The notes under the pieces: generated by a model
What the model saw: the letters and a program-made list of their open reading frames with translations, nothing else
Database searches by the model: none
What the model was told of the DNA's origin: nothing
In this document: in pieces, positions 11,975 to 64,000 of the stretch
Layout: each line of letters begins with the position of its first letter
How positions within the stretch are numbered: position 1 is the stretch's first letter
Position numbers and translations under genes: made by a program
NCBI GenBank assembly: GCA_002269645.1
Contig: NIVC01000636.1
Location: 1 to 64,000 of the forward strand
DNA: 64,000 bases
DNA from: Macrostomum lignano
Lineage: Eukaryota
Direction of reading: 5' to 3'

Positions 11975-12759
11975 GCAAGCAATGAGGCCTGAATGATACT
12001 CAGCGATCAAGATATTTATAAATTATAAATCATAAAGGACTACATATGTATATAAGCATATATATTATATGAGGCTATATATATCTAATGTATCTAGAAT
12101 ATATCTAGAAGGCTTCCCTTAAAGATACTGAATTGACTTCCTCATTATATCTACAATGCAATCATTCATTCAGGGTTTTTATACCATAAAAATACTATAG
12201 CTTCTCAAATTCCAATATCTACTTCAATGCAATGTTTTGGCAAAAACTATTATTAGATTTTATTTTTATAGTCCATTCAACTCATTGAAGATAAAAGGCA
12301 TTTTTTACATTTCTTACATAGGCAAAAAGCCCAGATGATATGCCTCTCATTATAAAGGCATATATGATATAAATAATATTATGCCACTCCACTTCTTTGC
12401 AGATTAAGAATATATAAGCATAGCTATTTACCTCTATATACTAAAGGATATTGTATCCATAGATCATCTATCCATATAGATATGGCTAGCCTAGGGGCTA
12501 TTATATATTAATATTGTTTTTAATAGGATAGGACTATATTAGCATATAATAGTAATGCTAAGTGAAACTAATATAGTCATATAATAGATCTAAAGACTTC
12601 TTTTAACCATCCTCCTTGCTTGACCTTGACCTTAATTCCTTAATTATTTGGCTAATAATACATTTGAAATATACTGTCTAATACAAATAACTTATTATAC
12701 TAAGGCCAAGTAATTATCAATTTATATAAGAATTCTAAGCTTATAATAAGTACTTTTTA

Positions 12760-36392: not shown

Positions 36393-39300
36393 TTACTCAG
36401 CAGTCGGCTTGAACCCACAGGCGCTCATCTTCTCGCGGAAGTCAGCGACCTCCCGGCGCCGGAACTCCTTGACGGCCGCCGCATCGGCCGGAGGTTCCCC
36501 GGCCGTCCGCTCGTACAGCCGAACCACCGTGATGTGCAGCGCCGCCAGCTGCAGGTCCGCGAACTGGAAAGGACACGTCGGATCAAAGTTTATCACGACA
36601 CCACTCTTCACTACTGTAAGTAGCAGTCAGTGCCTTAGACTTGTCTCAACTGACACTGAAGCCTTGCCAATACTAGCTCAACTCCCAGCTCACCAACAAG
36701 CTCAACTCCCAGCTCACCAACAGGCTCAACTCCCAGCTCACCAACAAGCTCAACTCTCAGCTCACCAACAAGCTCAACTCCCAGCTCACCAACAAGCTCA
36801 ACTCCCAGTTCACCAACAAGCTCAACTCCCAGCTCACCAACAAGCTCAACTCGATCCCAGCTCACCAACAAGCTCAACTCCCAGCTCACCAACAAGCTCA
36901 ACTCCCAGCTCACCAACAGGCTCAACTCCCAGCTCACCAACAAGCTCAACTCCCAGCTCACCAACAAGCTCAACTCCCAGCTCACCAACAAGCTCAACTC
37001 CCAGCTCACCAACAAGCTCAACTCCCAGCTCACCAACAAGCTCAACTCCCAGCTCACCAACAAGCTCTCCGAATCGCCGTCGCCGTTGCACTGCCTGACC
37101 TCGCCGTTCTTCGAGTAGCAGAAGACGCTGTCGAGCGGGTGCTGCGGCCCGCAGCCGTAGTCGAACTTGCGCAGCTCGGCGATGCTGCGGCTCCGCGAGG
37201 CGTTCCAGTGGGTCACCGCAATCTTGACAGCCTCCAGCTGGTTCTTGTAGACAGCCGTGGCCTCGTCATCGGCCGTGGAGTGCAGCGCCACCCTCACGCT
37301 GGCCAGGTGGCGGTACTTCCGGCGCTCCTCCAGGTGCTTCATCAAGCGCGCAGCCTCCGAACCGCAGCTCTGCTTGAGCAGCTCGACGAGGCGGTCGTCG
37401 GTGAGCCACAGCAGCGACTCCAGCGACTCCGGCTCGTCCAGTAGGTAGCGGATGGCCAAGCGGTTGACATCCGGGTCGTCACGGTGCGCCTGCAGGTGGC
37501 GTCGGGCGGCTGACAGCGCGTCCTGCAGGCTGCAAGGTGGTGAGGTGACCTGAGTCAATTGTCCTGTATTTCTGCTGTACTCAATAAAAGCTTATCGTTA
37601 GCGATTTTTATACATACGACTTTCTACTATTGCTACTGCTAGTAGAGCAGACTGAAAATTGGCGATCACAGGGAAATCCATGTGACAGGGGACGGCATTT
37701 CTTACACTTTCTCGAAGGCTACCGACTTCACGTGCTGGTAAGCCAGGTAGTGCTGCATCCTCCGCGAGATCAACAGGTTGATGTAGTCCAGCACCTGCTT
37801 GTCCCTCAGGACCAGCAGCTTGCGGTTGCCGGGGCAGGGCAGCACCCGCAACAGAGACAGCTGCCGAGTCGCATCGAAGCGGTTGGGCAGCCCCAGGCTC
37901 AGCGCGTCCCGGTTCATGTAGTCCAGCTTGTCCACGTCGTAGCCCGTGCGCTTGTTGTTAACGAACTGCGGTTTCAGAAATGCCAGTTGGTGTCTGATTG
38001 AGACAGAGATGATCTCCTGAGCTGACCACCTGAGCTGATCACCTGAGCTGATCACCTGAGCTGACCACCTGAGCTGATCATCTGAGCTGATCACCCAAGC
38101 TGATCACCTGAGCTGACCACCTGAGCTGATTTAGTGCTAACAAACTGAAAACTCCTATCTAGCTAATGCATTTTGCTGCGATTAACTGGCCGTCAGAGTT
38201 TGTCTACTGATAAGTAGAAAGTTTAGAGTGTGATGCGAAAAGCTCGCATGGCGGGCAAAGAAATGCCGCCATGCGAAAGCACAGGAGTGGAAGTTCTGTT
38301 CAGCCTGGCTAATGGGTGGAGTCCAGCCCGGTTCGATTCCACTTTCAGCTCGCTGACAGCGAGTGTGGGGTCCTTCTACTTTTAGTCGTCCATGGATCGG
38401 CCATCATGGGTCACCAACCTCGAACAGGAACTGCTTCTCGGGTGGGATTCGCTCGGAGTCGCCACCCGGTCCGCCCCGGATGAGGTCGCAGACCAGCTGC
38501 TTGTGGGTCCAGTTGGGCCTCCAGCAGCGGTCCATGAACGCAGAGAATTCCATGGACTCCTGGTCCTGCCTGCTGGCGATGTCGGTCACAATGGACTGGA
38601 ACACCTGCACGCTCATCGCCTCATGGTGATAGTCGATGCCGCAGGACTTCAGCAGTGACTCCCACAGGTGGGAGAACGGGCCGTGGCCGAGGTCGTGGCA
38701 GAGTCCCGCGATGGCCGCGCACAGCGCCTCGCTGTCCGAGAACTCCGACTCGGGCAGGCAGCTGCGCAGCTTCTTGCCCAGCTCCCAGGCCAGGTGGTAG
38801 GTGCTGCGGGCAGCGGCAGGTGGCAGAACTAAACTGCTCAGCGCTTCGAGCCAGCAGAGCAGCGACTTCGATTCACACAACATGCATTCACGCAGCATGC
38901 ATTCACACAACTGGCATTCACACAACATGCATTCACACAACATGCATTCACACAACTGGCATTCACACAACATGCATTCACGCAACATGCATTCACACAA
39001 CTGGCATTCACAAAACATGCATTCACACAACATGCATTCACACAACATGCATTCACACAACATGCATTCACACAACATGCATTCACGCAACATGCATTCA
39101 CACAACTGGCAATTATAACCTGAACTCACACATTCACACAAATAAATTCAATTAGCCTGCATTCACTTAGCCCGTATTCACACAACCTGCATTCACACAA
39201 CATGCATTCACACAACATGCATTCACACAACATGAATTCACACAACATGCATTCACACAACATGCATTCACACAACATGCATTCACGCAACATGCATTCA

Positions 39301-41526: not shown

Positions 41527-42307
41527 AAAATGTGTACTATATGCAATATACAATGGGTTTTTCTTAAGACATTTATATTAAGGCAATGTTGTAATATTGA
41601 ATAGAAAGCAATTTTTGCCACTATTAGTCTTTTGGATTATAACTATAATTGTAGGCAAAAACTATGTCTATGGCCTCATTTTTCTAATCATACCTTTTTC
41701 TATACAGCTAAATCCAAATATACTAAATCTAAATATACTAAATTTATATACTATAGTTATAGTAAGAGTAAGACACTAGAAAGAAGCTATAAATTGAGAT
41801 ATTGTATGAAATAAAAAAACTAGAGTCCTAAACCCCTCTAGCAATCAAATAGAGTCATTGCAAAGAAAGGCTACAATGTAAATAGAACCTAGGCACTATT
41901 TGGATTAAGGTCTATTATAAATAGAAGTATGCCATGCCACTTATGATTGGATAATATATTATGCAGATAAATGCAATAGATATTGAAACTTGAGGCATAG
42001 ACTTTAGGACTGAAACCCAATGACCACTCTTTGTTTAGTGACTGCTCTCTGTATTAATAGAATAGTAATGCAAATTTTAGTAAAAACAATATTAATGATA
42101 AAATCTATTTCACGAAGGCTGTGGGCAACCCAATGCATGGCCCCCTTTCTGTACATACTCATACACTCACAAAGGGTGTGCAGTGGCCCTGGCTTTCTAA
42201 TCATACTTCCTGCCCCCTTAAGATTTAAGCTATGATCATAAACATTTAGTAGCATGCATTGCATTTCCCCTACAGACTACCAAGTAGCCCAAGCAGACTG
42301 CTTGGAA

Positions 42308-43537
42308 ATGCTGCGCCCTGCCGCTATGAGCCCCAGTCGCCTCTTTAAACTTCTGCTGGCCATCGGTGGCTTTGCGGCCTGCTGTCTGGCGGTGCTGGCG
42401 CTGCTGGGCGGTGTGGACAGCAGCGGCTACCGGCTGACAGCGGAGGAGGCGACACAGCGGCCTGCCAGCCATCCGGGCAGCTGGGGGCAGCGGCAGCGGC
42501 CGCAGTTGCAGCCTCAGCCGGTGCGGGAGCTGCTGCCCTACCTCAGCGGCGAGTGCAGCGGCCGGGCGCCCTGCGTGGCCTTCGGCAGCCCGCTGTTCCA
42601 CCGGTGGCGCGGCTGGCTGCCGCTGGTGGACACCTGGCTGGCTGGCGGGCAGGCCGACTGCGGATTCGCCTGCGAGTTCATTGCCGACGCCAGCGCGGCA
42701 GATGCTGTGCTGTTCCACGGCCGCGATCTGCAGCCGCGGCTGTCGCTGGGCCGCAGTCTGCAGCAGTTCTGGGTCTACGTCAACATGGAGTCGCCGCTGG
42801 CCACCCGGCGCTACGGCTACAACGTGGCGGCCGACCCGAAGTTCCGCTTCCTGTTCAACTGGACGGCCACCACCCTGCGGAGCAGCTCCATCCCGCTGGC
42901 CTACGAAGTCTGGGAGCGCAGGCGCAGCCCGCTGGCCCCGGCCGAGCAGCTGTACTCCGTCAGCAAGAAGAAGCATCTGGCCTTCATCGCCTTCTCCAAC
43001 TGCAAGTATTCGTTCAACAATCGGACAGCGAAAGTGCGTGAGCTGCAGAAGTACATGGAGGTGCATGTGTACGGCGACTGCGGCGACAGGCGGCTGGCAA
43101 AGAATGCCACAGCGTTCAGGCAGCTGTCGGAGCTGTACCGCTTCTACCTGAGCTTCGAGAACGCGTTCTGCCGCGACTACATCACGGAGAAGCTGCACGC
43201 CAACGGCCTGCAGTCCATCGCCGTGCCAGTCGTGTTCGGCGGCCTGTCCCGAGCTGAGTACGAGGCGGTCAGCCCGCCGCGCTCATTCGTGTTCGCCCTG
43301 GACTTCGCCAGCATGAAGCAGCTGGCTGACCACCTCACCGAGCTGGCCGCTGATGAGGCCCGCTACTCCCGCTACTTCGACTGGAAACGGCACTACAGAG
43401 CCTCTCCCAGCTCTGCCATGCTGTGCGCCATCTGCCGCAAGCTGCACACCGACTCCGCCAGGTCTGTGGCCGACCTGAACGACTTCTCCGATGTGGCCGC
43501 CAACTGCCGGCCTGCGGACTTCCCCTACCTGCTGTGA
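42308..43537 (+). CDS. Intronless alpha-1,3-fucosyltransferase (CAZy GT10), type II membrane protein
   Basis: N-terminal TM segment (LLLAIGGFAACCLAVLALLGG), ADAVLFH, QQFWVYVNMESP, FNWTATT, and the alpha-1,3 motif YRFYLSFENAFCRDYITEKL...VPVVFG, then YFDWK. ATG 42308 is preferred; 42254 is possible. Confidence 0.93.
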   Translation: MLRPAAMSPSRLFKLLLAIGGFAACCLAVLALLGGVDSSGYRLTAEEATQRPASHPGSWGQRQRPQLQPQPVRELLPYLSGECSGRAPCVAFGSPLFHRWRGWLPLVDTWLAGGQADCGFACEFIADASAADAVLFHGRDLQPRLSLGRSLQQFWVYVNMESPLATRRYGYNVAADPKFRFLFNWTATTLRSSSIPLAYEVWERRRSPLAPAEQLYSVSKKKHLAFIAFSNCKYSFNNRTAKVRELQKYMEVHVYGDCGDRRLAKNATAFRQLSELYRFYLSFENAFCRDYITEKLHANGLQSIAVPVVFGGLSRAEYEAVSPPRSFVFALDFASMKQLADHLTELAADEARYSRYFDWKRHYRASPSSAMLCAICRKLHTDSARSVADLNDFSDVAANCRPADFPYLL

Positions 43538-51115: not shown

Positions 51116-53012
51116 ATGCAGGTGACTGAGGGTTTGAGGTGGAGTGCAGGTGTGTGAGGGTTTTAGGTGGAGTGCAGGTGTGTGAGGATTTGAGGTGGAG
51201 TGCAGGTGTGTGAGGGTTTGAGGTGGAGTGCAGGTGTGTGAGGGTTTGAGGTGGAGTGCAGGTGTGTGAGGGTTTGAGATGGAGTTCAGGTGACTGAGGG
51301 TTTGAGGTGGATGCAGGTGTGTGAGGGTTTGAGGTGGAGTGCAGGTGTGTGAGGGTTTGAGATGGAGTTCAGGTGACTGAGGGTTTGAGGTGGATGCAGG
51401 TGTGTGAGGGTTTGAGGTGGAGTGCAGGTGTGTGAGGGTTTGAGGTGGATGCAGGTGTGTGAGGATTTGAGGTGGAGTTCAGGTGTGTGAGGGTTTGAGG
51501 TGGAGTGCAGGTGTGTGAGGGTTTTAGGTGGAGTGCAGGTGTGTGAGGATTTGAGGTGGAGTGCAGGTGTGTGAGGGTTTGAGGTGGATGCAGGTGTGTG
51601 AGGGTTTTAGGTGGAGTGCAGGTGTGTGAGGATTTGAGGTGGGGTGCAGGTGTGTGAGGGTTTGAGGTGGAGTGCAGGTGTGTGAGGGTTTGAGGTGGAT
51701 GCAGGTGTGTGAGGGTTTGAGGTGGATGCAGGTGTGTGAGGGTTTGAGGTGGATGCAGGTGTGTGAGGGTTTGAGGTGGATGCAGGTGTGTGAGGGCTTG
51801 AGGTGGAGTGCAGGTGTGTGAGGGTTTGAGGTGGATGCAGGTGTGTGAGGATTTGAGGTGGATGCAGGTGTGTGAGGGTTTGAGGTGGAGTGCAGGTGTG
51901 TGAGGGTTTGAGGTGGAGTGCAGGTGTGTGAGGGTTTTAGGTGGAGTGCAGGTGACTGAGGGTTTGAGGTGGATGCAGGTGTGTGAGGGCTTGAGGTGGA
52001 TGCAGGTGTGTGAGGGTTTGAGGTGGATGCAGGTGTGTGAGGGCTTGAGGTGGAGTGCAGGTGTGTGAGGGTTTGAGGTGGATGCAGGTGTGTGAGGGTT
52101 TGAGGTGGAGTGCAGGTGTGTGAGGGTTTGAGGTGGAGTGCAGGTGTGTGAGGGTTTTAGGTGGAGTGCAGGTGTGTGAGGATTTGAGGTGGAGTGCAGG
52201 TGTGTGAGGGTTTGAGGTGGATGCAGGTGTGTGAGGGTTTGAGGTGGATGCAGGTGTGTGAGGGTTTGAGGTGGATGCAGGTGACTGAGGGTTTGAGGTG
52301 GATGCAGGTGTGTGAGGGTTTGAGGTGGAAGCAGGTGTGTGAGGGTTTTAGGTGGAGTGCAGGTGTGTGAGGGTTTTAGGTGGAGTGCAGGTGTGTGAGG
52401 GTTTGAGGTGGATGCAGGTGTGTGAGGGTTTTAGGTGGAGTGCAGGTGTGTGAGGATTTGAGGTGGATGCAGGTGTGTGAGGGTTTGAGGTGGATGCAGG
52501 TGTGTGAGGGTTTGAGGTGGATGCAGGTGACTGAGGGTTTGAGGTGGATGCAGGTGTGTGAGGGTTTGAGGTGGATGCAGGTGTGTGAGGGTTTGAGGTG
52601 GAAGCAGGTGTGTGAGGGTTTGAGGTGGAGTGCAGGTGTGTGAGGATTTGAGGTGGAGTGCAGGTGTGTGAGGGTTTGAGGTGGATGCAGGTGTGTGAGG
52701 GTTTGAGGTGGATGCAGGTGACTGAGGGTTTGAGGTGGAAGCAGGTGTGTGAGGGTTTGAGGTGGATGCAGGTGACTGAGGGTTTGAGTTAGATGCAGGT
52801 GACTGAGGGTTTGAGGTGGATGCAGGTGACTGAGGGTTTGAGGTGGATGCAGGTGACTGAGGATTTGAGGTGGATGCAGGTGACTGAAGGTTTGAGATGG
52901 ATGCAGGTGACTGAAGGTTTGAGGTGGAGTTGAGGTGACTGAGGGTTTGAGGTGGATGCAGGTGACTGAAGGTTCGAGGTGGAGTTGAGGTGACTGAGGG
53001 TTTGAGGTGGAG
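51116..53012. repeat. 27/28-bp intergenic minisatellite, ~1.9 kb
   Basis: Unit GCAGGTGTGTGAGGGTTTGAGGTGGA(G)T. Confidence 0.96.
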
Positions 53013-53707
53013 AGCATGAATATGGAATCCCAGGCCTAAAAACCAGAACATTACAAATCCCAAAACCTAGATGACTTGATGACTCACAAGAGCTCAAAGC
53101 TGTACCGCTGTACCATGAGTCAGTTCCATAAGGCCCCGCACACCGTCACGCACTGCAGGGGGCCCCCGGCTGATAAATGAGTTCTCAAATTCTTCAGACT
53201 GTGGGTTGCCGAACTGAGGGACCTCGGCTGGTGGCTCTTATCAGCCAGACTCAGCGCGGTCAGGAAAGTGCTCAGAACTCGGCCCACAACCCTGGAGGTC
53301 AGCTGGACAGGTGCTGACTGGCAATGGAGCCGCCGCACTGATCAAGCGGCGCCTTGCTTTGAAGACGCCAAAGCTCCATAATTAAGAAACTCAGATTGTC
53401 TCAATTTCAAAGCTAGAGACCTACCGTACTCAATTGAGCAGGTCAAAACAAATGATATTTCGCACAGAGACTTCGCACTCTTCAGCAGGGCGCTTTATTT
53501 AGCATGCAATTCTTAGCGTTGTGATGAGTCAAAAGCAGGCAATTTGGTTTGATCGTTGAGGAGAGAAAAAACTGATGCGGCAGTCTGGTAATCTTAGCAG
53601 ATCAGTGAATTTGAGCATGCGGCTGTGACAGGAAAAACCTATTTTAAAATATGCTATAAATATAAGTCACATCGACTGATGCTCCGGTACAGTGAATTTC
53701 TGAGAAG

Positions 53708-54118
53708 GGACGAGCGGGAGATGAAGCTGGAGGCTGCGGGGTCAGAGCTGGGAGCACAGATGAAGCAGTGAATGAAGAGGAGCGGGTGATGAAGCTGGAG
53801 GCTGCAGGGTCGGAGCTGGGAGCACAGATGAAGCAGTGAATGAAGAGGAGCGGGAGATGAAGCTGGAGGCTGCGGGGTCAGAGCTGGGAGCACAGATGAA
53901 GCAGTGAATGAAGAGGAGCGGGTGATGAAGCTGGAGGCTGCAGGGTCGGAGCTGGGAGCACAGATGAAGCAGTAAATGAAGAGGAGCGGGAGATGAAGCT
54001 GGAGGCTGCGGGGTCAGAGCTGGGAGCACAGATGAAGCAGTAAATGAAGAGGAGCGGGAGATGAAGCTGGAGGCTGCGGGGTCAGAGCTGGGAGCACAGA
54101 TGAAGCAGTGAATGAAGA
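53708..54118. repeat. ~68-bp array downstream of the TRP stop codon
   Basis: ~6 copies of GAGCGGGAGATGAAGCTGGAGGCTGCGGGGTCAGAGCTGGGAGCACAGATGAAGCAGTGAATGAAGAG. Confidence 0.92.
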
Positions 54119-54191
54119 ACAGCGGGCGAATGCCAGGCAAGATGCATGAGGGCCTCAGTAGCGCGCCAGCAGAGGCGGGTGTCAAAGGGGG

Positions 54192-57100
54192 TCACGGGCC
54201 CTCCTCGCGGCCCTCCTCAATGTAGGGCATGGCCAGGACGGACGCCCGCTTGTTGCTGATGTTGCTGGGGCCTCGGAGGCTGATGGCCTTGAGCTCCTTG
54301 ACCAGCGACTCCAGCTGCTTGACCGTCTCTTCAATGCGGTCGAATCTCTCCATCCGCTCGTTGAGGGCGTTCACCTGCTGGAAGATGATCTTGTTGCCTT
54401 CGTCCAGGTCCTCCTCGTCCAGCACCACGCCGTTGAGGGACGAGCGGCGGTTGCGGAAGGCCAGCGCCTGCGGGGCGATCGAGTGGGTAAACAGGTGGGC
54501 ATCCTTGCAGGTATCCTAGGTATCCTTTACAGGCACAGAATGTGCACCTGTTCTGTCTGTACAGGCACAGAATGTGCACCTGTTCTGTCTGTACAGGCAC
54601 AGAATGTGCACCTGTTCTGATCGCAGACTTGGGGAATCACAGCCCAGCCCGGCTCACCTGGTAGTACAGGCTGAGCAGGTACACCTTGCAGTCGTGCGGG
54701 GTGTCCCCGGCTGACGCGGGGGCTGCGGAATTCGCCGCGGCCTCGGCGGCAACAACGGCAGCGGCGGGCTGCCCGCGCTGCTCCTCACCGGCGCCGGAGC
54801 GGCGGCACAGTCGGCGCCAGACGAAGGACGCCAGGTTGCGCAGCTCCGACAGGATGTTGAAGGGCGGCGGCAGCGCCGACCTGGTGTTGAACTCCTCGAT
54901 AAGGTCGAACTTCTCGAACTGCCACATGGCCTTGGACTCGCTGTCGATGGCGTCGATGGTCTTGCTAAACATGGCGACGATGACGTTGAGCAGCAGGATC
55001 TGCATCACCACGATGTACAGCACCATGTACACCGTGGGCACCAGCACCGCGCCAATGGGGTGCACGCAGTCGGGCTCATCACCATCGTTTATGTTCGGCC
55101 CGGTGATGTCGCTGATGTTGCAGGGCACGAAGTTGTCGAGCCCGTACTCGCCCACGATGGCGTAGAAGGTGTTGCGGAACATGCCGAGGATGATCTCGCT
55201 GGCGCTCTCGCGACCTTCGGTGCCGGTGCTCTGGATGGACTTGCCCTCGGGTATTGCAGCGCCTGCGCCGTGGCGGTGGGGCGGTGGGCTGGTGGCGGCT
55301 CTGAACTGGACTGCGGCTCATGGAGCAACAGCGGGTCTCCGGGCAACAAATAGAGATTCACGCACTCCACACCCATTAGCACCCATTAGCACCCATCAGA
55401 ACCCATTAGCACCCATTAGAGTCCATTAGCACCCATTAGCACCCATTAGCACCCATTAGAACCCATTGGAACCCATTAGAACCCATTAGAACCCATTAGA
55501 ACCCATTAGAACCCATTAGCACCCATTAGCACCCATTAGAACCCATTGGAACCCATTAGAACCCATTAGAACCCATCAGAACCCATTAGCACCCATTAGC
55601 ACCCATTAGCACCCATTAGCACCCATTAGAACCCATTGAAACCCATTAGAACCCATTAGAACCCATTAGAACCCATTAGAACCCATTAGAACCCATTAGA
55701 ACCCATTAGCACCCATTAGCACCCATTAGAACCCATTAGAACACATTCTGCACCCATTAGCACCCATTAGAACCTATTAGCACTCATTAGAACCCATTAG
55801 AACCCATTAGAACCCATTAGAACACATTCTGCACCCATTAGCACCCATTAGAACCCATTCTGCACCCGTTAGCACCCAATAAAATATTTGTTGTAATAGT
55901 TGTAAAATATAAATGTAAAATTAGTTCTAAAATATTGCTCGTAATAGTTGATATTCTCCTTTGCTATTTTCTCGACAAGCACGGCAACGAAGGGATTCCC
56001 CAAGGCACGCAGCTGGTCCCCAATGCCCGGTGCAGCACAGCTGGTCCCCAATGCCCAGTGCAGCACAGCTGGTCCCCAATGCCCGGTGCAGCACAGCTGG
56101 TCCCCAATGCCCGGTGCAGCACAGCTGGTCCCCAATGCCCAGTGCAGCACAGCTGGTCCCCAATGCCCGGTGCAGCACAGCTGGTCCCCAATGCCCGGTG
56201 CAGCACAGCTGGTCCCCAATGCCCGGTGCAGCACAGCTGGTCCCCAATGCCCGGTGCAGCACAGCTGGTCCCCAATGCCCGGTGCAGCACAGCTGGTCCC
56301 CAATGCCCAGTGCAGCACAGCTGGTCCCCAATGCCCGGTGCAGCACAGCTGGTCCCCAATGCCCGGTGCAGCACAGCTGGTCCCCAATGCCCGGTGCAGC
56401 ACAGCTGGTCCCCAATGCCCGGTGCAGCACAGCTGGTCCCCAATGCCCAGTGCAGCACAGCTGGTCCCCAATGCCCGGTGCAGCACAGCTGGTCCCCAAT
56501 GCCCGGTGCAGCACAGCTGGTCCCCAATGCCCGGTGCAGCACAGCTGGTCCCCAATGCCCGGTGCAGCACAGCTGGTCCCCAATGCCCAGTGCAGCACAG
56601 CTGGTCCCCAATTCCCAGTGCAGCACAGCTGGTCCCCAATGCCCGGTGCAGCACAGCTGGTCCCCAATGCCCGGTGCAGCACAGCTGGTCCCCAATGCCC
56701 GGTGCAGCACAGCTGGTCCCCAGCACAGCCTCTCACATGGAAGGTGACGCCGAAGCCGAACATGAGCACGAACAGAATGAACAGGAAGGGCAGGAAGTCC
56801 TTCTTCACCATGAGCGACATCATCTTGAGCTTCGGGCCGAGGCTCTCCAGCACCACCGATATGTAGAGCAGGCGCACCCAGTACACCAGGCAGGTGGTGG
56901 TGAGCAGCACCAGCGACCAGTAGCGCTGGAACGGGTTGTGCACTGTGCTGTTGTGGATCCGCAGGGCGAAGGCGGTGAAGCCGCAGGTGATGGCGGTGAT
57001 GTCGATGACGTTCCAGCCGTCCAAGAAGTAGTTCTTGATGGTCTCCTCCCTGGCGCTGGTGATCATCTCGTTGATCTCCTCGACCAGGAAGCCCAGCAGG

Positions 57101-60100
57101 GTCAGGTAGCAGATGATCTCCCCGACGGAGAAGGCGCGGCCCATCTGGAACATGACCACGAAGGACAGCAGCAGCACGAAGCTGATGTGCGCCGTCACGT
57201 GCATGCGGAACTTCACGCAGGGGATCTGGTAGAACCGCAGCAGCTCCGCCAGCGGGCTCAGCCGCGGCCTCGGCTGCTGCTCCTCCTCCGGCTGCTTTTG
57301 CTGCTTCCGGCCGCCCTGCAGCAGCGCCACGCCCTGCTCGCTGGAGCCTCCGGTGCGCTTCTCATGCGCCCGGCAGCGGCCGTCGGCGTTCCCGGATGAC
57401 TCGCTGATGCTGCTGGGCCGCAGGCGCACGTAGTCGGGCTCGTGAGCGCGGAAGCGGGGCATCAGGAACAGCAGCAGCGGGTACAGCAGCGGCACGAAGC
57501 CGCAGGCGATGGCCAGCTCGATCAGCGCTCCCTGGTGAGCGTCCTTGCGGGCGAAGAAGAAGTCCGTGTACCACATCCGGTTCAGCGCCTCCTGTGGACG
57601 GCGGGTTGGGGTGTCATATAGATTGGCTGAGTCTGCAGTCTGCACCCAGCTGAATCTGCAGGCTGCACCCAGCTGAATCTGCAGTCTGTACCCAGCTGAG
57701 TCTGCAGTCTGCACCCAGCTGAATCTGCAGTCTGCACCCAGCTGAATCTGCAGTCTGCACCCAGCTGAATCTGCAGTCTGCACCCAGCTGAATCTGCAGA
57801 CTGCACCCAGCTGAATCTGCAGACTGCACCCAGCTGAATCAGCAGTCTGCACCCAGCTGAATCTGCAGACTGCACCCAGCTGAATCTGCAGACTGCACCC
57901 AGCTGAATCTGCAGTCTGCACCTAGCTGAATCTGCAGGCTGCACCCAGCTGAGTCTGCAGTCTGCACCCAGCTGAATCTGCAGTCTGCACCCAGCTGAAT
58001 CTGCAGTCTGCACCCAGCTGAATCTGCAGGCTGCACCCAGCTGAGTCTGCAGTCTGCACCCAGCTGAATCTGCAGGCTGCACCCAGCTGAATCTGCAGGC
58101 TGCACCCAGCTGAATCTGCAGGCTGCACCCAGCTGAATCTGCAGTCTGCACCCAGCTGAATCTGCAGGCTGCACCCAGCTGAATCTGCAGTCTGCACCCA
58201 GCTGAATCTGCAGTCTGCACCCAGCTGAATCTGCAGTCTGCACCCAGCTGAATCTGCAGTCTGCACCCAGCTGAATCTGCAGTCTGCATCCAGCTGAATC
58301 TGCAGGCTGCACCCAGCTGAATCTGCAGACTGCACCCAGCTGAATCTGCAGGCTGCACCCAGCTGAAGCTGCAGTCTGCACCCAGCTGAATCTGCAGTCT
58401 GCACCCAGCTGAATCTGCAGTCTGCACCCAGCTGAATCTGCAGTCTGCACCCAGCTGAATCTGCAGTCTGCACCCAGCTGAATCTGCAGTCTGCACCCAG
58501 CTGAATCTGCAGTCTGCATCCAGCTGAATCTGCAGGCTGCACCCAGCTGAATCTGCAGACTGCACCCAGCTGAATCTGCAGGCTGCACCCAGCTGAATCT
58601 GCAGTCTGCACCCAGCTGAATCTGCAGACTGCACCCAGCTTAATCTGCAGGCTGCACCCAGCTGAATCTGCAGTCTGCATCCAGCTGAATCTGCAGTCTG
58701 CACCCAGCTGAATCTGCAGGCTGCACCCAGCTGAATCTGCAGTCTGCACCCAGCTGAATCTGCAGTCTGCACCCAGCTGAATCTGCAATCTACGAGTACA
58801 GTCTTCATCCAGCTGGACTCCCAGCCTCCTCACCTGCACGATGTCGATGATGACGAAGCTGCTGGATTCGCCCTTGGCCGCCAGCTCCAAGATGCTGTAG
58901 CCGCCGAAGGTGTCGAGCGGCAGCATGACCAGCTCCATGGTCAGGCAGTTGTTCGGTGTCACGTCGACATCCTTGATGCTGCGGAGGGCCTGCATGGCGA
59001 TGCCCTCGCAGGTGATGGCCATCTTGGTAGCCTTGTTGGCATAGACGTCCTCGATGTCGCGCCGGCGGCCGAGGCTGCGCAGGATTTTGGCCAGCAGCAG
59101 TGCCTGCGGAATGGTGTCGAAGTCCTCCTGGCGCAGGAAGTAGGGCGCCAGGCGCAGACGGCCGGTCAGCACGCACCAGACCGCCAGGGACTCCACCGGG
59201 TCGCGCATGGCCTTCAGGTGCGGCGGCTCCTGTCGGCCAGGCGTGGTGGCCGGGGTCTCCTCCGCCTCCGAGTCGTCCGCGCCGACCCACTGCAGCTGCC
59301 AGAACTGTGTGAGCTGCGCTACCAGGCGGTGCAGCTTCAGGCTGCTGACCCGGCCTTCATCATTGAGGCAGTTGCGGCACACCAGGCCCTTGATGCCGTC
59401 CTTGCGGCGCTCGCCCAGGCTTTGGTTGTACACCTGGTGGGAGCGGATGAGCAGTAGATTCAGAACTGCTCTTTCATGAAACACTCGTATCGCTCTTCAT
59501 CTTGCTCTGATGCTTTGCATTTACAGACCCTGCCAGTGTCTGTGTGTCAGTGCTGTGTCAGTGTCTGCCAGTGTCTGTGTCAGTGCTGTGTCAGTGTCTG
59601 CCAGTGTCTGTGTGTCAGTGCTGTGTCAGTGTCTGCCAGTGTCTGTGTGTCGGTGCTGTGTCAGTGTCTGCCAGTGTCTGCCAGTGTCTGTGTGTCAGTG
59701 CTGTGTCAGTGTCTGCTAGTGTCTGCCAGTGTCTGTGTGTCAGTGCTGTGTCAGTGTCTGCCAGTGTCTGTGTGTCAGTGCTGTGTCAGTGTCTGCCAGT
59801 GTCTGTGTGTCGGTGCTGTGTCAGTGTCTGCCAGTGTCTGCCAGTGTCTGTGTGTCAGTGCTGTGTCAGTGTCTGCTAGTGTCTGCCAGTGTCTGTGTGT
59901 CAGTGCTGTGTCAGTGTCTGCCAGTGTCTGCCAGTGTCTGTGTGTCAGTGCTGTGTCAGTGTCTGCCAGTGTCTGTGTGTCGGTGCTGTGTCAGTGTCTG
60001 CCAGTGTCTGCCAGTGTCTGTGTGTCAGTGCTGTGTCAGTGCTGTGTCAGTGTCTGCTAGTGTCTGCCAGTGTCTGTGTGTCAGTGCTGTGTCAGTGTCT

Positions 60101-63100
60101 GCCAGTGTCTGCCAGTGTCTGTGTGTCAGTGCTGTGTCAGTGTCTGCCAGTGTCTGTGTGTCAGTGCTGTGTCAGTGTCTGCCAGTGTCTGCCAGTGTCT
60201 GTGGGCCAGTGTCTGCCAGTGTCTGTGTGTCAGTGCTGTGTCAATGTCTGCCAGTGTCTGCCAGTGTCTGTGTGTCAGTGCTGTGTCAGTGTCTGCCAGT
60301 GTCTGCCAGTGTCTGCCAGTGTCTGTGTGTCAGTGCTGTGTCAGTGTCTGCCAGTGTCTGCCAGTGTCTGTGTGTCAGTGCTGTGTCAGTGTCTGCCAGT
60401 GTCTGCCAGTGTTTGTGGGCCAGTGTCTGCCAGTGTCTGTCAGTGTCTGCCAGTGTCTGCCAGTGTCTGCCAGTGTCTTCCAGTGTCTGCCAGTTTCTGT
60501 TCCAGTTTCTGTGCCAGTCTCTGCGCCAGTGTCTGCCAGTGTCTGTCAGTGTCTGCCAGTGTCTGCCAGTGTCTGCCAGTGTCTTCCAGTGTCTGCCAGT
60601 TTCTGTTCCAGTTTCTGTGCCAGTCTCTGCGCCAGTGTCTGCCAGTGTCTGCCAGTGTCTGCAGTGTCTGCCAGTTTCTGTGCCAGTCTCTGCGAGTGTC
60701 TGCCAGTATCTGCGAGTGTCTGCCAGTGTCTGTGCCAGAAGCTCATTTTCCCAGCACCTCAGCACTCACGTGAACAATCCTGTTCTCAAGGTGCACCACA
60801 ACAGCGGACCACAGCATCCCGAGCTTCATCACCTCCTGCAGCAGCGCCTCATTCTGGGGCACGAAGATGTGCTTGAGAAAGTTGTCGGCGATCTTCCCTA
60901 CCATGCCGCCGCTGATGATCTCGTCCGCCAGGCCGCTCATGCAGGCCTTCAGCACAATCTCAACGAACTCGTTGATGTCGAACTTCTCGCTGAAGCGGAT
61001 GTGCGTGAGCAGCGTGTTGTTGGTGTTGTTGTCCAGCAGGTTCGTCTCCTCGTTGCACTCGTTGTGGCCGAAGTTGTGCTGGAACTCGTTGTCCACCGTG
61101 CGCAGCAGCCGGAGGAATTGCTGGCCCTGCCGCATCGCCAGCAGCTCCTTGATGCAGCTGCCACCGCTGCTGAGCACGGGGCTCACCATCCACTGGCCCA
61201 TACCCTCCAGGATCGCCGTGTCCTGTGGGATGGCCCAGTTTTGATGCAAAACCTGCAATTCCCCACCTGCAGTTCCCCTCTTGCAGTTCCCCTCCTGCAG
61301 TTCCCCTCCTGCAGTTCCCCTCCTGCAGTTCCCCACCTGCAGTTCCCCTCCTGCAGTTCCCCACCTGCAGTTCCCCTCTTGCAGTTCCCCTCCTGCAGTT
61401 CCCCTCCTGCAGTTCCCCTCCTGCAGTTCCCCTCCTGCAGTTCCCCACCTGCAGTTCCCCTCTTGCAGTTCCCCTCCTGCAGTTCCCCTCCTGCAGTTCC
61501 CCTCCTGCAGTTCCCCACCTGCAGTTCCCCACTTGCAGTTCCCCACTTGCAGTTCCCCACCTGCAGTTCCCCACCTGCAGTTCCCCTCCAGCAGTTCCCC
61601 ACCTGCAGTTCCCCTCCTGCAGTTCCCCACCTGCACTTCCCCACCTACAGTTCCCCACCTGCAGTTCCCCACCTGCAATTCCCCACCTGCAGTTCCCCCT
61701 GCAGTTCTTCTCCTGCAGTTCCCCACCTGCAGTTCCCCTCCTTCAGTTCTTCTCCTGCAGTTCCCCACCTGCAGTTCCCCACCTGCAATTCCCCTCCTGC
61801 ACTTCCTCACCTGCAGCTCCCCACCTGCAGTTCCCCACTTGCAGTTCCCCACTTGCAGTTCCCCACCTGCAGTTCCCCACCTGCAGTTCCCCTCCTGCAG
61901 TTTTTCTCCCGCAATTCCCCTCCTGCAGTTCCCCTCCTGCAGTTCCCCACCTGCAGTTCCCCACCTGCAGTTCCCCAAGCAGGCCCAGCCCAGTGCGGCC
62001 TCACCTGCTTCGCCAGCACGATGTCAATGGGTGTTCGCTCCTGAATGTCGTAGAGGTCCAGCCGGGGGCCGGAGCGCAGCACGGTCAGGAACAGCTTGGA
62101 GTTGCCCAGGTTGGCGGCAATGTGCAGCGGCGTGAAGCCCCTGGCGCCGTGCCGATTGCACAGGTGCGGGTTGTGCGACAGCAGCAGCTGGGCGGCGCGC
62201 ACGTTCTCCTCCAGGCAGGCCCGGTGGATGGGCAGGTCGCCGTGCTGGTCGAAGGTGCCGCAGCTGGCGCCGTGGTCCAGCAGCAGGTGCAGAAACCGGT
62301 CATCTTTGCGGATCCTCACGGCTGCGTGCACGGTGGACTCGACCTTGTTGGCGCCGCCGTTGGCATTGGCGCCCTCCTCCAGCAGCAGCTGCAGCGCTTC
62401 CAGCGATTTTCGCGCCAACGCCAGGTCCAGTGCTGTCTCGCCATTCTTCGTCTGCGCTTCCAGCTCAGCCTGAAGGGTTCCAGGCGGAGACGGGAGTTCC
62501 AACTTTAACATCTGCTCAGTCACTAAGATGGCAGCAGCAGCACCTGACAAATCAGTCACTGGTCTATCACTGCTCAGTCACTGCTCAGTCACTGCTCAGT
62601 CACTGCTCAGTCACTGCTCAGTCACTGCTCAGTCACTGGTCAGTCACTGCTCAGTCACTGCTCAGTCACTGCTCAGTCACTGGTCAATCATTTCTCAGTC
62701 ACTGGTCAGTCATTGCTCAGTCACTGGTCAGTCACTGCTCAGTCACTGCTCAGTCACTGGTCAATCATTTCTCAGTCACTGGTCAGTCATTGCTCAGTCA
62801 CTGGTCAGTCACTGCTCAGTCACTGCTCAGTCACTGCTCAGTCACTGCTCAGTCACTGGTCAATCATTTCTCAGTCACTGGTCAGTCATTGCTCAGTCAC
62901 TGGTCAGTCATTGCTCAGTCACTGGTCAGTCACTGCTCAGTCACTGGTCAATCACTGCTCGGTCACCGCTCAGTCACTGCTCAGTCACTGGCCAGTCACT
63001 GCTCAGTCACTGCTCAGTCACTGGTCAATCACTAGACACAAGAACTGAGGGTCTCACGTGGCTGCTGATGAGGACGCTCAGCACATCGCAGCGGTTGTCG

Positions 63101-63228
63101 GCTGCCGCCTTGTGCAGGAGTCGCCAGCCCAGGCTGCTGTCCAGCTCCGAGTTCGGCGACACGCTGCCCGCTGCCAGCAGCTCGCGCAGCAGGGACGGAG
63201 ATTCGTAGGCGCGGGACAGGCTGCCCAT
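54192..63228 (-). CDS. TRP cation channel with N-terminal ankyrin repeats and a TRPM-like channel core
   Basis: Exons 63058-63228 (the exon may extend to 63253 with upstream exons), 62005-62469, 60770-61222, 58834-59433, 56737-57591, 54658-55230/55262 and 54192-54503. Ankyrin repeats ([26 protein letters not shown]). TRPM-like [73 protein letters not shown], and a C-terminal coiled coil. Confidence 0.88.
55370..63030. repeat. TRP intronic arrays: 10-bp (55370-55880), 28-bp (55990-56726), 23-bp (57625-58790), GTGTCTGCCA-type (59530-60740), 14-bp (61250-61980) and 11-bp (62515-63030)
   Basis: Units ACCCATTAG(A/C); GCAGCACAGCTGGTCCCCAATGCCCGGT; CTGCAGTCTGCACCCAGCTGAAT; CAGTGTCTGC; CTGCAGTTCCCC(A/T)C; CTCAGTCACTG. 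Confidence 0.94.
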
Positions 63229-64000
63229 GCTGCCCGCGGCCGGCGGCCCTGGACTGGTGGAAGGAGCGGGCGGGAGTGAGAAACCAGGAGAGACAGTAGG
63301 GAGAGAGCGGAAAGGCTTGGGGCGCCCTGGACTGGCACCGGTCGCAGACTCGGTGAGGCTAAAATAGGCTTCTGGGCCAGGGAGGGAGGGCCGCCGCGCA
63401 CCATGCAGTAACTCCTACCCTGGCCTTTGAGCCTTTGACACTGACTTCTGAGCGGCTGCTGCGGCTGCGTGCAGGGGCAACCCCGCCCCAGCCTCCGCCT
63501 GCCGGACGGGCCAATAGCGGTCGGGCCCTGCGAGTTGAACCGGGCAGCTCTGGGAGGGGGGGGGGTGGGGGCGCAGAGCAGAAATGCAGCGAGGCGCAGC
63601 AACTATTCTGTAGAAGAAAACACAGTTGGTTTTCTGTCTCTGATTCGCATTGAAGAATGGAGCGAGCACGAGTTTTACAGACCGAGTGTGCAGCAGAGGC
63701 TCCAACGGGCAGTGGGCAGGGAGAGGGTGGGGGCGAACAGCGACTGGACCGCTCAATACAACTGACTGCATCGAGTCGGCCGCAACAACACAGTCCTGAG
63801 CTTGTCACAGACGTATCAGCTTTCTAATCGGCGGCCCCTCTAATGTTGCTCTCATAATAAAATATTAAACTCGAAAGCCGGCCCTCCCCTGTTTGCCGAG
63901 TTGCTGTTCCAGACTGCACTTCGTTCTCTGAGAAGACTCAAAGGCAGACGGGGTACAGTGCTCACTGAGCTATTTTCACAATTGAGCGCTGCGCTAACCA

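Follow-up and report, generated by a model that had tools for sequence, protein, structure and literature searches.

A gene at the end of a 64,000-nucleotide stretch of the Macrostomum lignano genome (contig NIVC01000636.1, positions 1 to 64,000; hereafter the window) very probably belongs to a flatworm-specific family of ankyrin-bearing, TRPM-like proteins typified by TRPM_MCLZ (Smp_333650), and its product is most likely a tetrameric, Ca2+-permeable cation channel. We describe its gene structure and domains, document that its channel core is of the TRPM type and that it falls within the ankyrin-bearing clade, and report the conservation of its ligand pocket and Ca2+ site. The link to TRPM_MCLZ was drawn from residue signatures, their spacing, protein sizes, taxa and an exon-3 duplication, rather than from a direct alignment of Smp_333650. 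TRPM_MCLZ, the subject of a literature dating from 2023 to 2026 (Park et al. 2024 JBC; Rohr et al. 2026), is the target of the drug meclonazepam; like its 63 parasitic-flatworm orthologues, it has an N-terminal ankyrin region, no MHR1/2-SLOG and a short C-terminal part that carries no enzyme domain, and it has been termed 'TRPM-like' (PMC10788528, PMC11731825, PMC12861061). A preliminary description of the locus had suggested an undescribed subfamily, but this architecture was already published for TRPM_MCLZ, and the M. lignano gene lies within that family. The ankyrin-for-SLOG design is rare among animals and is known from parasitic flatworms as TRPM_MCLZ; its presence and expansion in Macrostomum seem to be unreported in the TRPM_MCLZ literature.

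Gene structure

The gene occupies positions 63228-54192 of the minus strand and consists of seven exons, the spliced protein being 1141 amino acids long (the preliminary description had estimated ~1150). The coding blocks were found where that description had placed them, on the minus strand, but two boundaries had to be moved, exon 4 now beginning at 59433 (VYNQSL) and exon 6 reaching 54658 (...SLYYQ). All acceptors are of the polypyrimidine-AG type and all donors read GTGAG; every junction is in phase 0 with strong splice signals, and the introns are packed with minisatellites. Once a one-base gap was bridged, the protein was 99.7% identical over 1141 amino acids to the M. lignano UniProt entry P0001, with S308T, G650D and A1025V as the sole differences.

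Exon 1 (63058..63228; aa 1-57), with the ATG at 63228, encodes an N-terminal cap and ankyrin repeat 1; it matched P0001 aa 1-57 at 100% by tblastn, produced an Ank_3 match, and ends in the donor CAC/gtgaga. Exon 2 (62005..62469; aa 58-212) carries ankyrin repeats 2-6, lies between the acceptor ccttcag/GCT and the donor CAG/gtgagg, and likewise matched P0001 (aa 58-212) at 100%; its Pfam matches were Ank_2 (1e-15) and Ank (2e-13), and its helix pairs were modeled by AF2 at a pLDDT of 85-93. An all-helical linker begins in exon 3 (60770..61222; aa 213-363), of which the linker part had neither a Pfam nor a PDB sequence match, and AF2 predicted helices here with pLDDT mostly 73-89 and a single dip at aa 264-273. 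Exon 4 (58834..59433; aa 364-563), the acceptor of which (ccaccag/GTGTAC) was set by comparison with P0001, holds the linker end and an MHR4-like/TRPM2-like domain, and as an exon piece matched PF25508 at 8.8e-9 over profile positions 123-255. Exon 5 (56737..57591; aa 564-848; Ion_trans by Pfam) comprises the pre-S1 region, a disordered insert and S1-S5, including the pocket residues of the VSLD and the S2 and S3 Ca2+-site motifs EEINE and WNVID, assigned by alignment to nvTRPM2 and TRPM1 together with a motif table. Exon 6 (54658..55262; aa 849-1050) extends from the S5-pore linker through, in order, the pore helix, the filter VGEYG, S6, the TRP helix ([13 protein letters not shown]), LPPPF and the post-TRP helices. 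Exon 7 (54192..54467) encodes a long C-terminal helix and the TGA stop at 54194-54192.

It was indeed found that ankyrin repeats and channel occur together in one gene, as the preliminary description had held, since the paralogue P0121 joins them, in the same architecture, in a single uninterrupted, intronless genomic ORF of 3363 nt; P0132 is also a single ORF, on its own contig. Of the two outcomes that had been named as counting against the combined channel, a core of another TRP type did not arise, the core being TRPM-type, and separate transcripts are made improbable by the P0121 ORF, which joins both parts. That the ankyrin exons (62005-63228) are instead a separate upstream gene, with the channel gene starting further downstream, is highly improbable. 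The minisatellite-filled introns of 0.8-1.3 kb between the ankyrin exons and the MHR4 exon would fit such an artefact, but the phase-0 junctions with strong splice signals and the domain order of P0121 (ankyrin, MHR4, channel) argue against it, as do the recurrence of the architecture in ~10 Macrostomum paralogue clusters and four flatworm classes, the expression and function of Sm.TRPM_MCLZ with the same architecture, and the confident AF2 transition from ankyrin repeats to linker (pLDDT 86-90 across residues 190-230).

A missing base in exon 6

Exon 6 is 605 nt long, one base below a multiple of 3, and a CCC run at 55249..55251 of the minus strand lacks one base relative to the P0001 reading (ALQYP/EGKS). 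In the assembled CDS the frame shifts after codon ~852 and meets a stop at codon 905, upstream of the pore, so that this copy as assembled may not yield a channel; one placeholder base at 55249-55251 brings back the 1141-residue ORF. The missing base is thus either an assembly error or the mark of a pseudogenised copy. The latter, with this copy a pseudogene, non-functional allele or homeologue, truncated after S5, of an ankyrin-TRPM gene that otherwise functions, is a possibility to be taken seriously, although it is the less probable of the two. It accords with the early stop, and the P0001 reading was restored by no alternative canonical acceptor, the only in-frame options being a weak donor (T/GTGCTG) or an upstream acceptor adding ~21 residues; moreover, many M. 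lignano genes exist in several near-identical copies, of which one could decay. Against decay, the rest of the gene is intact, with canonical splice sites, three amino acid differences from P0001 over 1141 residues, and no further stop or frameshift. The base is missing within a homopolymer (CCC versus presumably CCCC), and miscounted homopolymers are the error seen most often in long-read assemblies. Such frameshifts also abound in the older UniProt models of this locus (P0002-P0007 and P0122); their reading as paralogues of 45-70% identity was dropped, since they represent this locus, or ones near-identical to it, with the frame shifted.

Elsewhere in the window, the ORFs at 29666-30103, 36635-37558 and 38404-39141, considered as SAMHD1-like HD-domain exons, had no Pfam support at E<=1e-4.

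Domain architecture

The N-terminal ankyrin region was recognized by Pfam in the exon pieces and in the full model alike (Ank_2, Ank, Ank_4 and Ank_5; E 5e-20 to 2e-11), the full-model matches falling in residues 34-194 (Ank_2 5e-20, Ank_4 3e-15, Ank 1.5e-11). In the AF2 model it appears as an N-cap, five canonical helix pairs and a partial sixth (residues 33-229), in keeping with the five to six repeats noted earlier. Residues 213-432 that follow are helical in the model but were assigned to no known domain. Pfam further identified Ion_trans (5e-12) and a TRPM2-like domain (PF25508; E 1e-7, 33 bits) that covers only profile positions 126-255 of 257, whereas canonical TRPMs match this domain at full length with 150-190 bits. 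The MHR4 likeness pointed out at the outset is weak yet correct: MHR4 of TRPM8 is matched by [24 protein letters not shown] at an E of about 4e-4, and the region matched TRPM8/2/7/3/4/5 only, i.e., TRPMs alone. No Pfam match in the protein was obtained for LSDAT_euk/SLOG (LSDAT_euk none at E<=0.1), LSDAT_prok, NUDIX, alpha-kinase or TRPM_tetra (PF16519). An N-terminal ankyrin region on a TRPM-type body without SLOG, NUDIX or kinase, as first described, was thus borne out, together with the TRP helix and PPPF motif (within LPPPF).

Only ~140 residues follow the TRP region, and this C-terminus is free of enzyme domains. AF2 placed here, with moderate confidence, a helix of 41 residues (1073-1113), which makes the exon 7 helix a candidate tetramerising coiled coil, although no TRPM_tetra match accompanied it. 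The premise of the preliminary description that TRPMs have no ankyrin repeats applies to canonical repeats, but Burroughs (2015), as cited in PMC13143021, reported divergent ones within MHR3/MHR4.

The channel core

The core of the protein is TRPM-type, and not TRPC, TRPN or TRPA. The 60 top-scoring PDB sequences for the S1-TRP region were all TRPMs (8e-30 to 3e-18), residues 449-1017 matched TRPM3 at 1e-40 (phmmer against PDB), and TRPMs made up 49 of the 50 best structure matches in Foldseek. The Ca2+-site positions align to those of nvTRPM2, namely E-x-x-E in S2, N-x-x-D in S3 and a glutamate in the TRP helix; at the last S2 position, canonical TRPMs have Q, as do the neodermatan proteins of the clade described below.

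That the channel is a divergent TRPN, TRPA, TRPC or TRPV was considered in view of its N-terminal ankyrin repeats, the rank of NOMPC in Foldseek (sixth), and the dominance of ankyrin proteins and TRPN in the full-length sequence search. However, the NOMPC matches cover query residues 33-177, which are ankyrins only, and the S1-TRP and MHR4 matches were confined to TRPMs. The core also scored 28-40 bits with TRPN against 57-123 bits with SLOG-bearing TRPMs, and the TRPN outgroup separated from the TRPM-like group at 100% bootstrap in neighbor-joining (NJ). The TRPM-like S1-S6 region of the preliminary description thus held by sequence, structure and tree, and the grouping with TRPC, TRPN or TRPA named there as its refutation did not occur. 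On core similarity and tree, identity with TRPN, TRPA, TRPC or TRPV was rejected, its probability being next to nil.

A flatworm clade of ankyrin-bearing TRPMs

With exon 5 as query, 1.84 billion representative proteins were searched by phmmer, and the best 150 of 333 matches were considered. Among these, the ankyrin-bearing, SLOG-free proteins, excepting the weak outlier P0264, fell in one clade of 22, consisting of 17 ankyrin proteins and 5 N-terminally truncated sequences. Bootstrap support for the clade was 92% with the core (125 sequences, 301 columns) and 94.5% with MHR3/4 plus core (82 sequences, 517 columns); the trees were distance-based only (NJ, ScoreDist distances, 200 bootstraps), on a data set in which Smp_333650 itself was absent and no TRPS sequences were identified. 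A SLOG jackhmmer seed was negative in all 17 full-length ankyrin-clade proteins and positive in 54 other matches, and a local NUDIX seed was negative in all members of the clade. All named members among the best 150 of 333 matches are flatworms (Macrostomum, Opisthorchis, Dicrocoelium, Fasciolopsis, Schistocephalus and Protopolystoma), so that the clade unites Macrostomum with trematodes, cestodes and monogeneans, further members coming from Logan/ENA/MetaClust (P0132, P0133, P0145, P0136 and P0235; run accession DRR639838). The Macrostomum proteins, in at least ten paralogue clusters, form an expansion of their own (99%), sister to the branch with the neodermatan proteins (98%).

In separate searches, the word-indexed search with the full-length protein yielded, past the Macrostomum matches, an overwhelming number of ankyrin proteins. 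With the body only, and with an alignment of 9 family sequences, every match was a Macrostomum model, either of this locus or of one closely related to it.

Pocket residues and TRPM_MCLZ

The published TRPM_MCLZ pocket (H827/H831/Y864/E868/R943/x946/Y1117) corresponds to 845/849/882/886/961/964/1125 of Dicrocoelium P0137, a constant offset of +18 across S1-S4. The variable S4 residue is Y in Dicrocoelium and Fasciolopsis, F in the cestode and N in O. felineus; the Y and F agree with the published Fh-Y994 and Eg-F952. The Opisthorchis models with two channel domains reproduce the published exon 3a/3b duplication. Judged by these sequence signatures, the neodermatan members of the clade represent TRPM_MCLZ. 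At the seven sites the M. lignano protein reads H, H, F, E, R, Y and F, and thus retains the four pocket residues that vary least among the 63 published orthologues; F at position 1117 occurs in Gyrodactylus too, according to the TRPM_MCLZ paper. The S1 H-x3-H signature is typical of the clade: each of its two positions is His in 18 of the 22 clade members, compared with 10 of 93 other TRPMs at the second position.

The M. lignano channel would be expected to answer meclonazepam poorly or not at all, considering that its S4 tyrosine is of the low-sensitivity or insensitive type (S. japonicum, Fasciola). Many true TRPM_MCLZ orthologues (Fasciola, Echinococcus) are themselves insensitive to meclonazepam, and drug response is therefore not family-defining.

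Origin of the clade

The place of the ankyrin clade within the TRPM/TRPS radiation was not fixed by the trees, backbone bootstraps being 3-47%; a sister relationship to the flatworm SLOG+NUDIX clade was tried and dropped, at 34% with the core and 0% with the longer MHR3/4+core alignment. These values are among the points in favor of an ancient lineage that branched off early, either as the sister of TRPM+TRPS or before that, and retained ancestral ankyrins without any N-terminal swap, as are an MHR4 similarity far weaker than that among canonical TRPMs and the placement of TRPM_MCLZ 'next to' other TRPMs, as 'TRPM-like', by Rohr et al. Nonetheless, we regard such antiquity as unlikely. An ancient lineage would be expected to persist in further phyla, yet the named members (best 150 of 333 matches; 1.84 billion representatives) are all flatworms; the clade lies within the TRPM-like group, 100% away from TRPN, and its core has the TRPM hallmarks, i.e., the Ca2+-site motifs, a W-x-F-x-[KR]-[FY] TRP box, LPPP and MHR4. 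TRPS proteins, in which no ankyrin repeats were detected, are SLOG- and Nudix-linked (PMC7306681); since TRPS and TRPM are both SLOG-linked, parsimony favors secondary loss of SLOG.

Tentatively, and with rather low probability, the family may have arisen by stepwise N-terminal replacement in the flatworm stem, through an intermediate with ankyrin, SLOG, MHR3/4, channel and NUDIX that would survive in Macrostomum (P0189/PAA85706.1 and P0308/PAA68780.1), followed by expansion of the SLOG-less form there into at least ten paralogues. In P0189 and P0308 the last ankyrin repeat and the SLOG start lie within one exon; their ankyrins matched those of the ankyrin clade at ~30 bits, no better than generic ankyrins or TRPN. 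If stepwise replacement were true, the parasite drug target would be the sole remnant of a more extensive family of channels with a probably sensory role.

Proposed function and significance

By homology with solved TRPM structures and with Sm.TRPM_MCLZ, which in HEK293 cells produced Ca2+ signals in response to the drug as well as single-channel currents (PMC10788528), we infer that the protein would assemble as a tetramer and form a non-selective cation channel, permeable to Ca2+, co-dependent on Ca2+ and gated through the VSLD cavity. In such a channel, S1-S4 would form a voltage-sensor-like domain with a ligand cavity shut by the TRP helix, and S5-pore-S6 the pore domain, in which the filter follows the pattern [VF]G[ED]Y. 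On the cytosolic side, the layer of MHR4 and pre-S1 is kept, ~6 ankyrin repeats and the helical linker stand in for the nucleotide-binding SLOG (MHR1/2) domain, and NUDT9H and kinase are absent; the long C-terminal helix would probably serve as the central coiled coil.

TRPM_MCLZ is one of just two validated schistosome TRP drug targets and has been studied in parasites alone. Finding its family, in ~10 paralogue clusters, in a free-living flatworm amenable to transgenesis offers an accessible experimental system, which could reveal what ankyrin-TRPMs sense and how the exchange of SLOG for ankyrin alters gating. It also corrects a generalization, as both large TRPM/TRPS phylogenies omit Platyhelminthes and call the TRPM-TRPS lineage ankyrin-free, and it permits consistent naming of proteins currently labeled 'ANK_REP_REGION domain-containing', 'hypothetical' or 'TRPM7'.

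Comparison with known channels

TRPN (NOMPC) resembles the M. lignano protein in placing ankyrin repeats at the N-terminus, ahead of a TRP channel that includes a TRP helix, but it has no MHR4, far more repeats (29 in NOMPC), and the low core score and outgroup position given above. Canonical TRPMs (TRPM2/nvTRPM2, TRPM1/3, TRPM4/5/7/8) are the best sequence and structure matches over residues ~449-1017, and share MHR4, pre-S1, S1-S6, the Ca2+ positions in S2, S3 and TRP, LPPP, the C-terminal helix, and a variant of the TRP box (WQFEKF versus WKFQRY). Unlike them, the flatworm protein lacks SLOG/MHR1-2, the defining melastatin N-terminus, as well as NUDT9H/kinase, and gave no TRPM_tetra match; its TRPM2-like match is weak and half-length, and it has canonical ankyrin repeats at the N-terminus. 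TRPS (ced-11-like soromelastatins) is similarly a divergent TRPM relative with a TRPM-like body, but is set apart by its SLOG and Nudix links and by having shown no ankyrin repeats, as described in PMC7306681. The flatworm SLOG+NUDIX TRPMs (the TRPM_PZQ 'nudix' subclade; M. lignano P0162/P0150/P0189/P0308 and S. spindale P0173) belong to the same phylum, have the smallest mean core-tree distance to the ankyrin clade, and include two Macrostomum proteins, P0189 and P0308, with ~3 N-terminal ankyrin repeats; they differ in that SLOG, NUDIX and the TRPM2-like domain at full length are all retained.

The closest counterpart is TRPM_MCLZ, which has the same domain order (ankyrin in place of SLOG/MHR1-2, MHR4, S1-S6, TRP helix, short enzyme-free C-terminus), belongs to the same clade (92-94.5% NJ bootstrap), and shares H827, H831, E868 and R943, the M. 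lignano tyrosine at the variable S4 position being a known variant (F/H/Y). The M. lignano gene nonetheless differs in belonging to a Macrostomum-specific expansion and not being a 1:1 orthologue, in the length of its protein (1141 versus about 1380 amino acids), and in its 7 exons (1 in P0121) versus typically 3, the channel being split over exons 5 and 6, whereas exon 3 typically holds the whole channel in TRPM_MCLZ. Among the residues, Y864 and Y1117 are both replaced by F, S2 reads EEINE instead of EEIRQ, and the filter is a TRPM-like VGEYG where neodermatan members have IFEVS; and its host, in contrast to those of TRPM_MCLZ, is a free-living animal.

Gene structure and genomic setting

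The window is GC-rich and eukaryotic. By six-frame translation, seven coding blocks were found on its minus strand, and their bounds were settled after comparison with database models: exon 1, 63228-63058; exon 2, 62469-62005; exon 3, 61222-60770; exon 4, 59433-58834; exon 5, 57591-56737, which spans pre-S1 to S5; exon 6, 55262-54658 (605 nt); and exon 7, 54467-54192. Every exon has a polypyrimidine-AG acceptor, a GTGAG-type donor and phase 0. The top database match was P0001, a UniProt model of 1141 amino acids from the free-living flatworm M. lignano, labelled 'ANK_REP_REGION domain-containing protein', from which the spliced translation differs by three residues only (S308T, G650D and A1025V).

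Relative to the P0001 reading (…TFH|ALQYP EGKS…), however, the CCC run at 55251-55249 (minus strand, exon 6) is one base short, such that, as assembled, the coding sequence loses its frame after S5 and ends at codon 905, ahead of the pore helix and S6. Since the rest of the gene is intact and the gap lies within a homopolymer, an assembly indel is the likelier explanation; that the early stop marks a pseudogenised duplicate is, given the intact remainder, rather unlikely. Earlier UniProt models of this locus (P0002-P0007 and P0122) are full of similar frame shifts, and some were named for spurious domains (calponin-homology, guanylate cyclase, DUF202). Their reading as 45-70%-identical paralogues was rejected, as they are translations, with shifted frames, of this locus or of near-identical ones.

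Introns and intergenic DNA are largely minisatellite arrays; in 52000-63033 and throughout the window, nearly all such stretches are minisatellites with periods of 10-80 nt and up to 109 copies, which generate long spurious ORFs on both strands. Neighboring genes encode the C-terminal half of a Ser/Thr kinase domain (6549-7343, plus), an exon with a UBA-like domain (11549-12010, minus), two exons of an MFS_2 sugar-type transporter (16454-16849 and 20993-21466, plus) and a single-exon GT10 fucosyltransferase of 427 amino acids (42254-43537, plus). A mariner-type transposase with an intact 307-residue ORF (24885-25808, plus; Transposase_1, DDE_3 and HTH domains) resides within an AT-rich island. 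Two sets of related ORFs in opposite orientation (29666-30103, plus; 36635-39141, minus) had no Pfam match at E<=1e-4, and one of them contains a 10-residue motif reminiscent of SAMHD1-type HD-domain phosphohydrolases.

Ankyrin repeats on a TRPM-type body

Pfam analysis of the window protein assigned ankyrin repeats to residues 34-194 (Ank_2, 5e-20), a TRPM2-like (MHR3/4) domain, in its C-terminal half only, to residues 422-557 (1e-7), and Ion_trans to residues 716-958 (5e-12), and detected no SLOG (LSDAT_euk; the N-terminal MHR1/2 domain of canonical TRPMs), NUDIX, alpha-kinase or TRPM_tetra domain. An AlphaFold2 model built from a 15-sequence family alignment (mean pLDDT 73.8, pTM 0.69) placed an N-cap and five to six ankyrin helix pairs up to about residue 229, in agreement with the 5-6 repeats of the preliminary description. 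These are followed by an all-helical linker (about 236-405) with sequence matches to nothing, a confidently modelled MHR4/pre-S1 block (445-612), six transmembrane helices, a pore helix, a TRP helix and a C-terminal helix of 41 residues.

Against all PDB sequences, residues 449-1017 matched TRPM3 and TRPM1 at about 1e-40 and nvTRPM2 at 4e-35, while the best 60 matches of the S1-TRP core by itself were all TRPM (8e-30 to 3e-18); TRPM cryo-EM structures likewise occupied 49 of the first 50 Foldseek places. The stretch singled out earlier as MHR4-like indeed aligned with TRPM8 MHR4 (E about 4e-4), its sole matches being TRPMs. The positions that we take to be the TRPM Ca2+ site are S2 E-x-x-Q, S3 N-x-x-D and a TRP-helix Glu; by alignment to nvTRPM2, the window protein has E-x-x-E in S2 and keeps the other two. 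The same alignment revealed a filter, VGEYG, resembling the TRPM YGE[LV], and an LPPPF motif; the TRP box reads WQFEKF, in contrast to the canonical WKFQRY. By homology, therefore, the body is TRPM-type, and the proposed combination of ankyrin repeats with a TRPM-like S1-S6 region, TRP helix and PPPF motif, lacking NUDIX and kinase domains, is upheld by the Pfam, PDB sequence and Foldseek matches together with the model.

Distribution and phylogeny

An exhaustive phmmer search of 1.84 billion representative proteins with exon 5 as query returned 333 matches. ANK, SLOG, MHR3/4 and NUDIX were annotated locally on the matches listed (the best 150 of 333), and a sample was checked with Pfam. Among these, ANK and SLOG were mutually exclusive with two exceptions, P0189 and P0308. 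A neighbor-joining tree was built from the channel core (125 sequences, 301 columns, 200 bootstraps, TRPN outgroup). It united every ANK-bearing protein without SLOG, apart from the single weak outlier P0264, in a 22-member clade at 92% support, the value being 94.5% on a 517-column MHR3/4+core alignment. Within this ANK clade there is a Macrostomum-only expansion with 10 representatives at the 50% level (99% support), which an eleventh Macrostomum sequence, the fragment P0205, joins at 69%. Its sister is a 98% branch of Dicrocoelium, Fasciolopsis, Opisthorchis, Protopolystoma, Schistocephalus and four further proteins; among the matches listed, all clade members with a named organism are flatworms. 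The clade lies inside the TRPM-like group, separate from TRPN at 100%, with backbone values of 3-47%.

The window gene's nearest true paralogue, P0121 (46-51% identical), has the same domain order, Ank + TRPM2-like + Ion_trans, yet is a single uninterrupted, intronless ORF of 3363 nt in GCA_002269645.1 (locus L002:6001-9363, from NIVC01001761.1), as opposed to seven exons in the window gene; parasitic (neodermatan) genes for TRPM_MCLZ, the schistosome meclonazepam target, typically have three. P0121 could be an old retrocopy. P0132, an ankyrin-TRPM of 1072 amino acids, again consists of one ORF, in this case on a Logan contig (locus L001:1298-4516, run DRR639838). In the tree it lies between the Macrostomum and the neodermatan groups, and in S1 it has Tyr-x3-Tyr in place of the clade's His-x3-His; its source is possibly another free-living flatworm. 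Because P0121 and P0132 are single ORFs, the ankyrin repeats and channel belong to one protein rather than to separate transcripts; the core, matching TRPMs, does not fall within TRPC, TRPN or TRPA.

Origin of the architecture

Two large TRPM/TRPS phylogenies sampled no Platyhelminthes and called the lineage ankyrin-free (PMC7306681, PMC13143021). In our trees, bootstrap values for a position of the ANK clade next to the flatworm SLOG+NUDIX (TRPM_PZQ-type) clade were 34% with the core and 0% with the longer alignment. Since the named members among the matches listed are all flatworms and both TRPM and TRPS are SLOG-linked, ankyrin repeats more probably took the place of SLOG secondarily; the early-branching origin also raised in the preliminary description, for which the low backbone values leave room, is unlikely on the same grounds. 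The two M. lignano exceptions, P0189 (PAA85706.1) and P0308 (PAA68780.1), belong to the SLOG+NUDIX clade, and in both some three ankyrin repeats precede SLOG + TRPM2-like + Ion_trans + NUDIX. A fusion of neighboring genes was ruled out for P0189 (gene at locus L003:3001-22147, from NIVC01000307.1), because its exon 3 (L003:4771-5055) runs from the final part of the last repeat into the beginning of SLOG. Such an architecture is a possible intermediate on the way to ankyrin-TRPMs without SLOG, homology of its repeats to those of the ANK clade being putative.

Proposed mechanism

By homology, the window protein would assemble as a tetramer and conduct cations non-selectively, Ca2+ included, with gating through the S1-S4/TRP-helix cavity and Ca2+ as a probable co-factor. 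Structurally, MHR1/2-MHR3 would be replaced by the ankyrin tier and the helical linker, and a C-terminal coiled coil would sit on the channel axis.

Relationship to TRPM_MCLZ

The design of the window gene is unusual for a TRP channel, and the original observation was correct; the subfamily is nonetheless not undescribed, as the same design has been published as TRPM_MCLZ. Sm.TRPM_MCLZ (Smp_333650, 1380 amino acids), the meclonazepam target, 'lacks the NH2-terminal MHR1/2 or SLOG domain'; its N-terminus bears ankyrin(-like) repeats, its C-terminus is short and free of enzyme domains, and in HEK293 cells it yields drug-evoked Ca2+ signals and single-channel currents. From it, 63 orthologues were curated from trematodes, monogeneans and cestodes, for which the authors proposed the name 'TRPM-like' (PMC10788528, PMC11731825, PMC12861061). 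The link was tested at the level of the published pocket residues. Dicrocoelium P0137 has the same residues at H827, H831, Y864, E868, R943, the variable S4 position 946 and Y1117, with a constant +18 offset across S1-S4. At the variable S4 position, Dicrocoelium and Fasciolopsis have Tyr and the cestode has Phe, in agreement with the published Fh-Y994 and Eg-F952; O. felineus has Asn. Opisthorchis viverrini models P0128 and P0284 show two channel domains in succession, in keeping with the published duplication (3a/3b) of the channel-encoding exon 3 of TRPM_MCLZ in Opisthorchis, Clonorchis and Paragonimus; these public models wrongly take in both exons.

At the corresponding sites the window protein has H, H, F, E, R, Y and F, the S1 H-x3-H pair being typical of the ANK clade and uncommon elsewhere, and given its S4 Tyr, poor meclonazepam sensitivity is expected; in S. 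japonicum, Tyr at this position has been exchanged for His experimentally. In an independent supplement, Smp_333650 has strong full-length matches in the planarians Schmidtea (32% over 1101 amino acids, E 1e-150) and Dendrocoelum (E 3e-145); one planarian homologue is Schmidtea h1SMcT0013144.1. Free-living as well as parasitic flatworms therefore have the family, a point that the publications consulted do not discuss, nor do they mention Macrostomum in that connection. Judged by sequence, the window gene belongs to a family already described, as a member from a free-living species in which that family has expanded, and does not represent a new subfamily. Neodermatan members of the ANK clade keep the TRPM2-type EE-x-RQ in S2 but have a divergent filter, IFEVS, whereas in the Macrostomum paralogues the filter stays TRPM-like ([VF]G[ED]Y) and it is the S2 Gln that has changed, to Glu; from these differences, ion selectivity may differ between the parasite and free-living channels.
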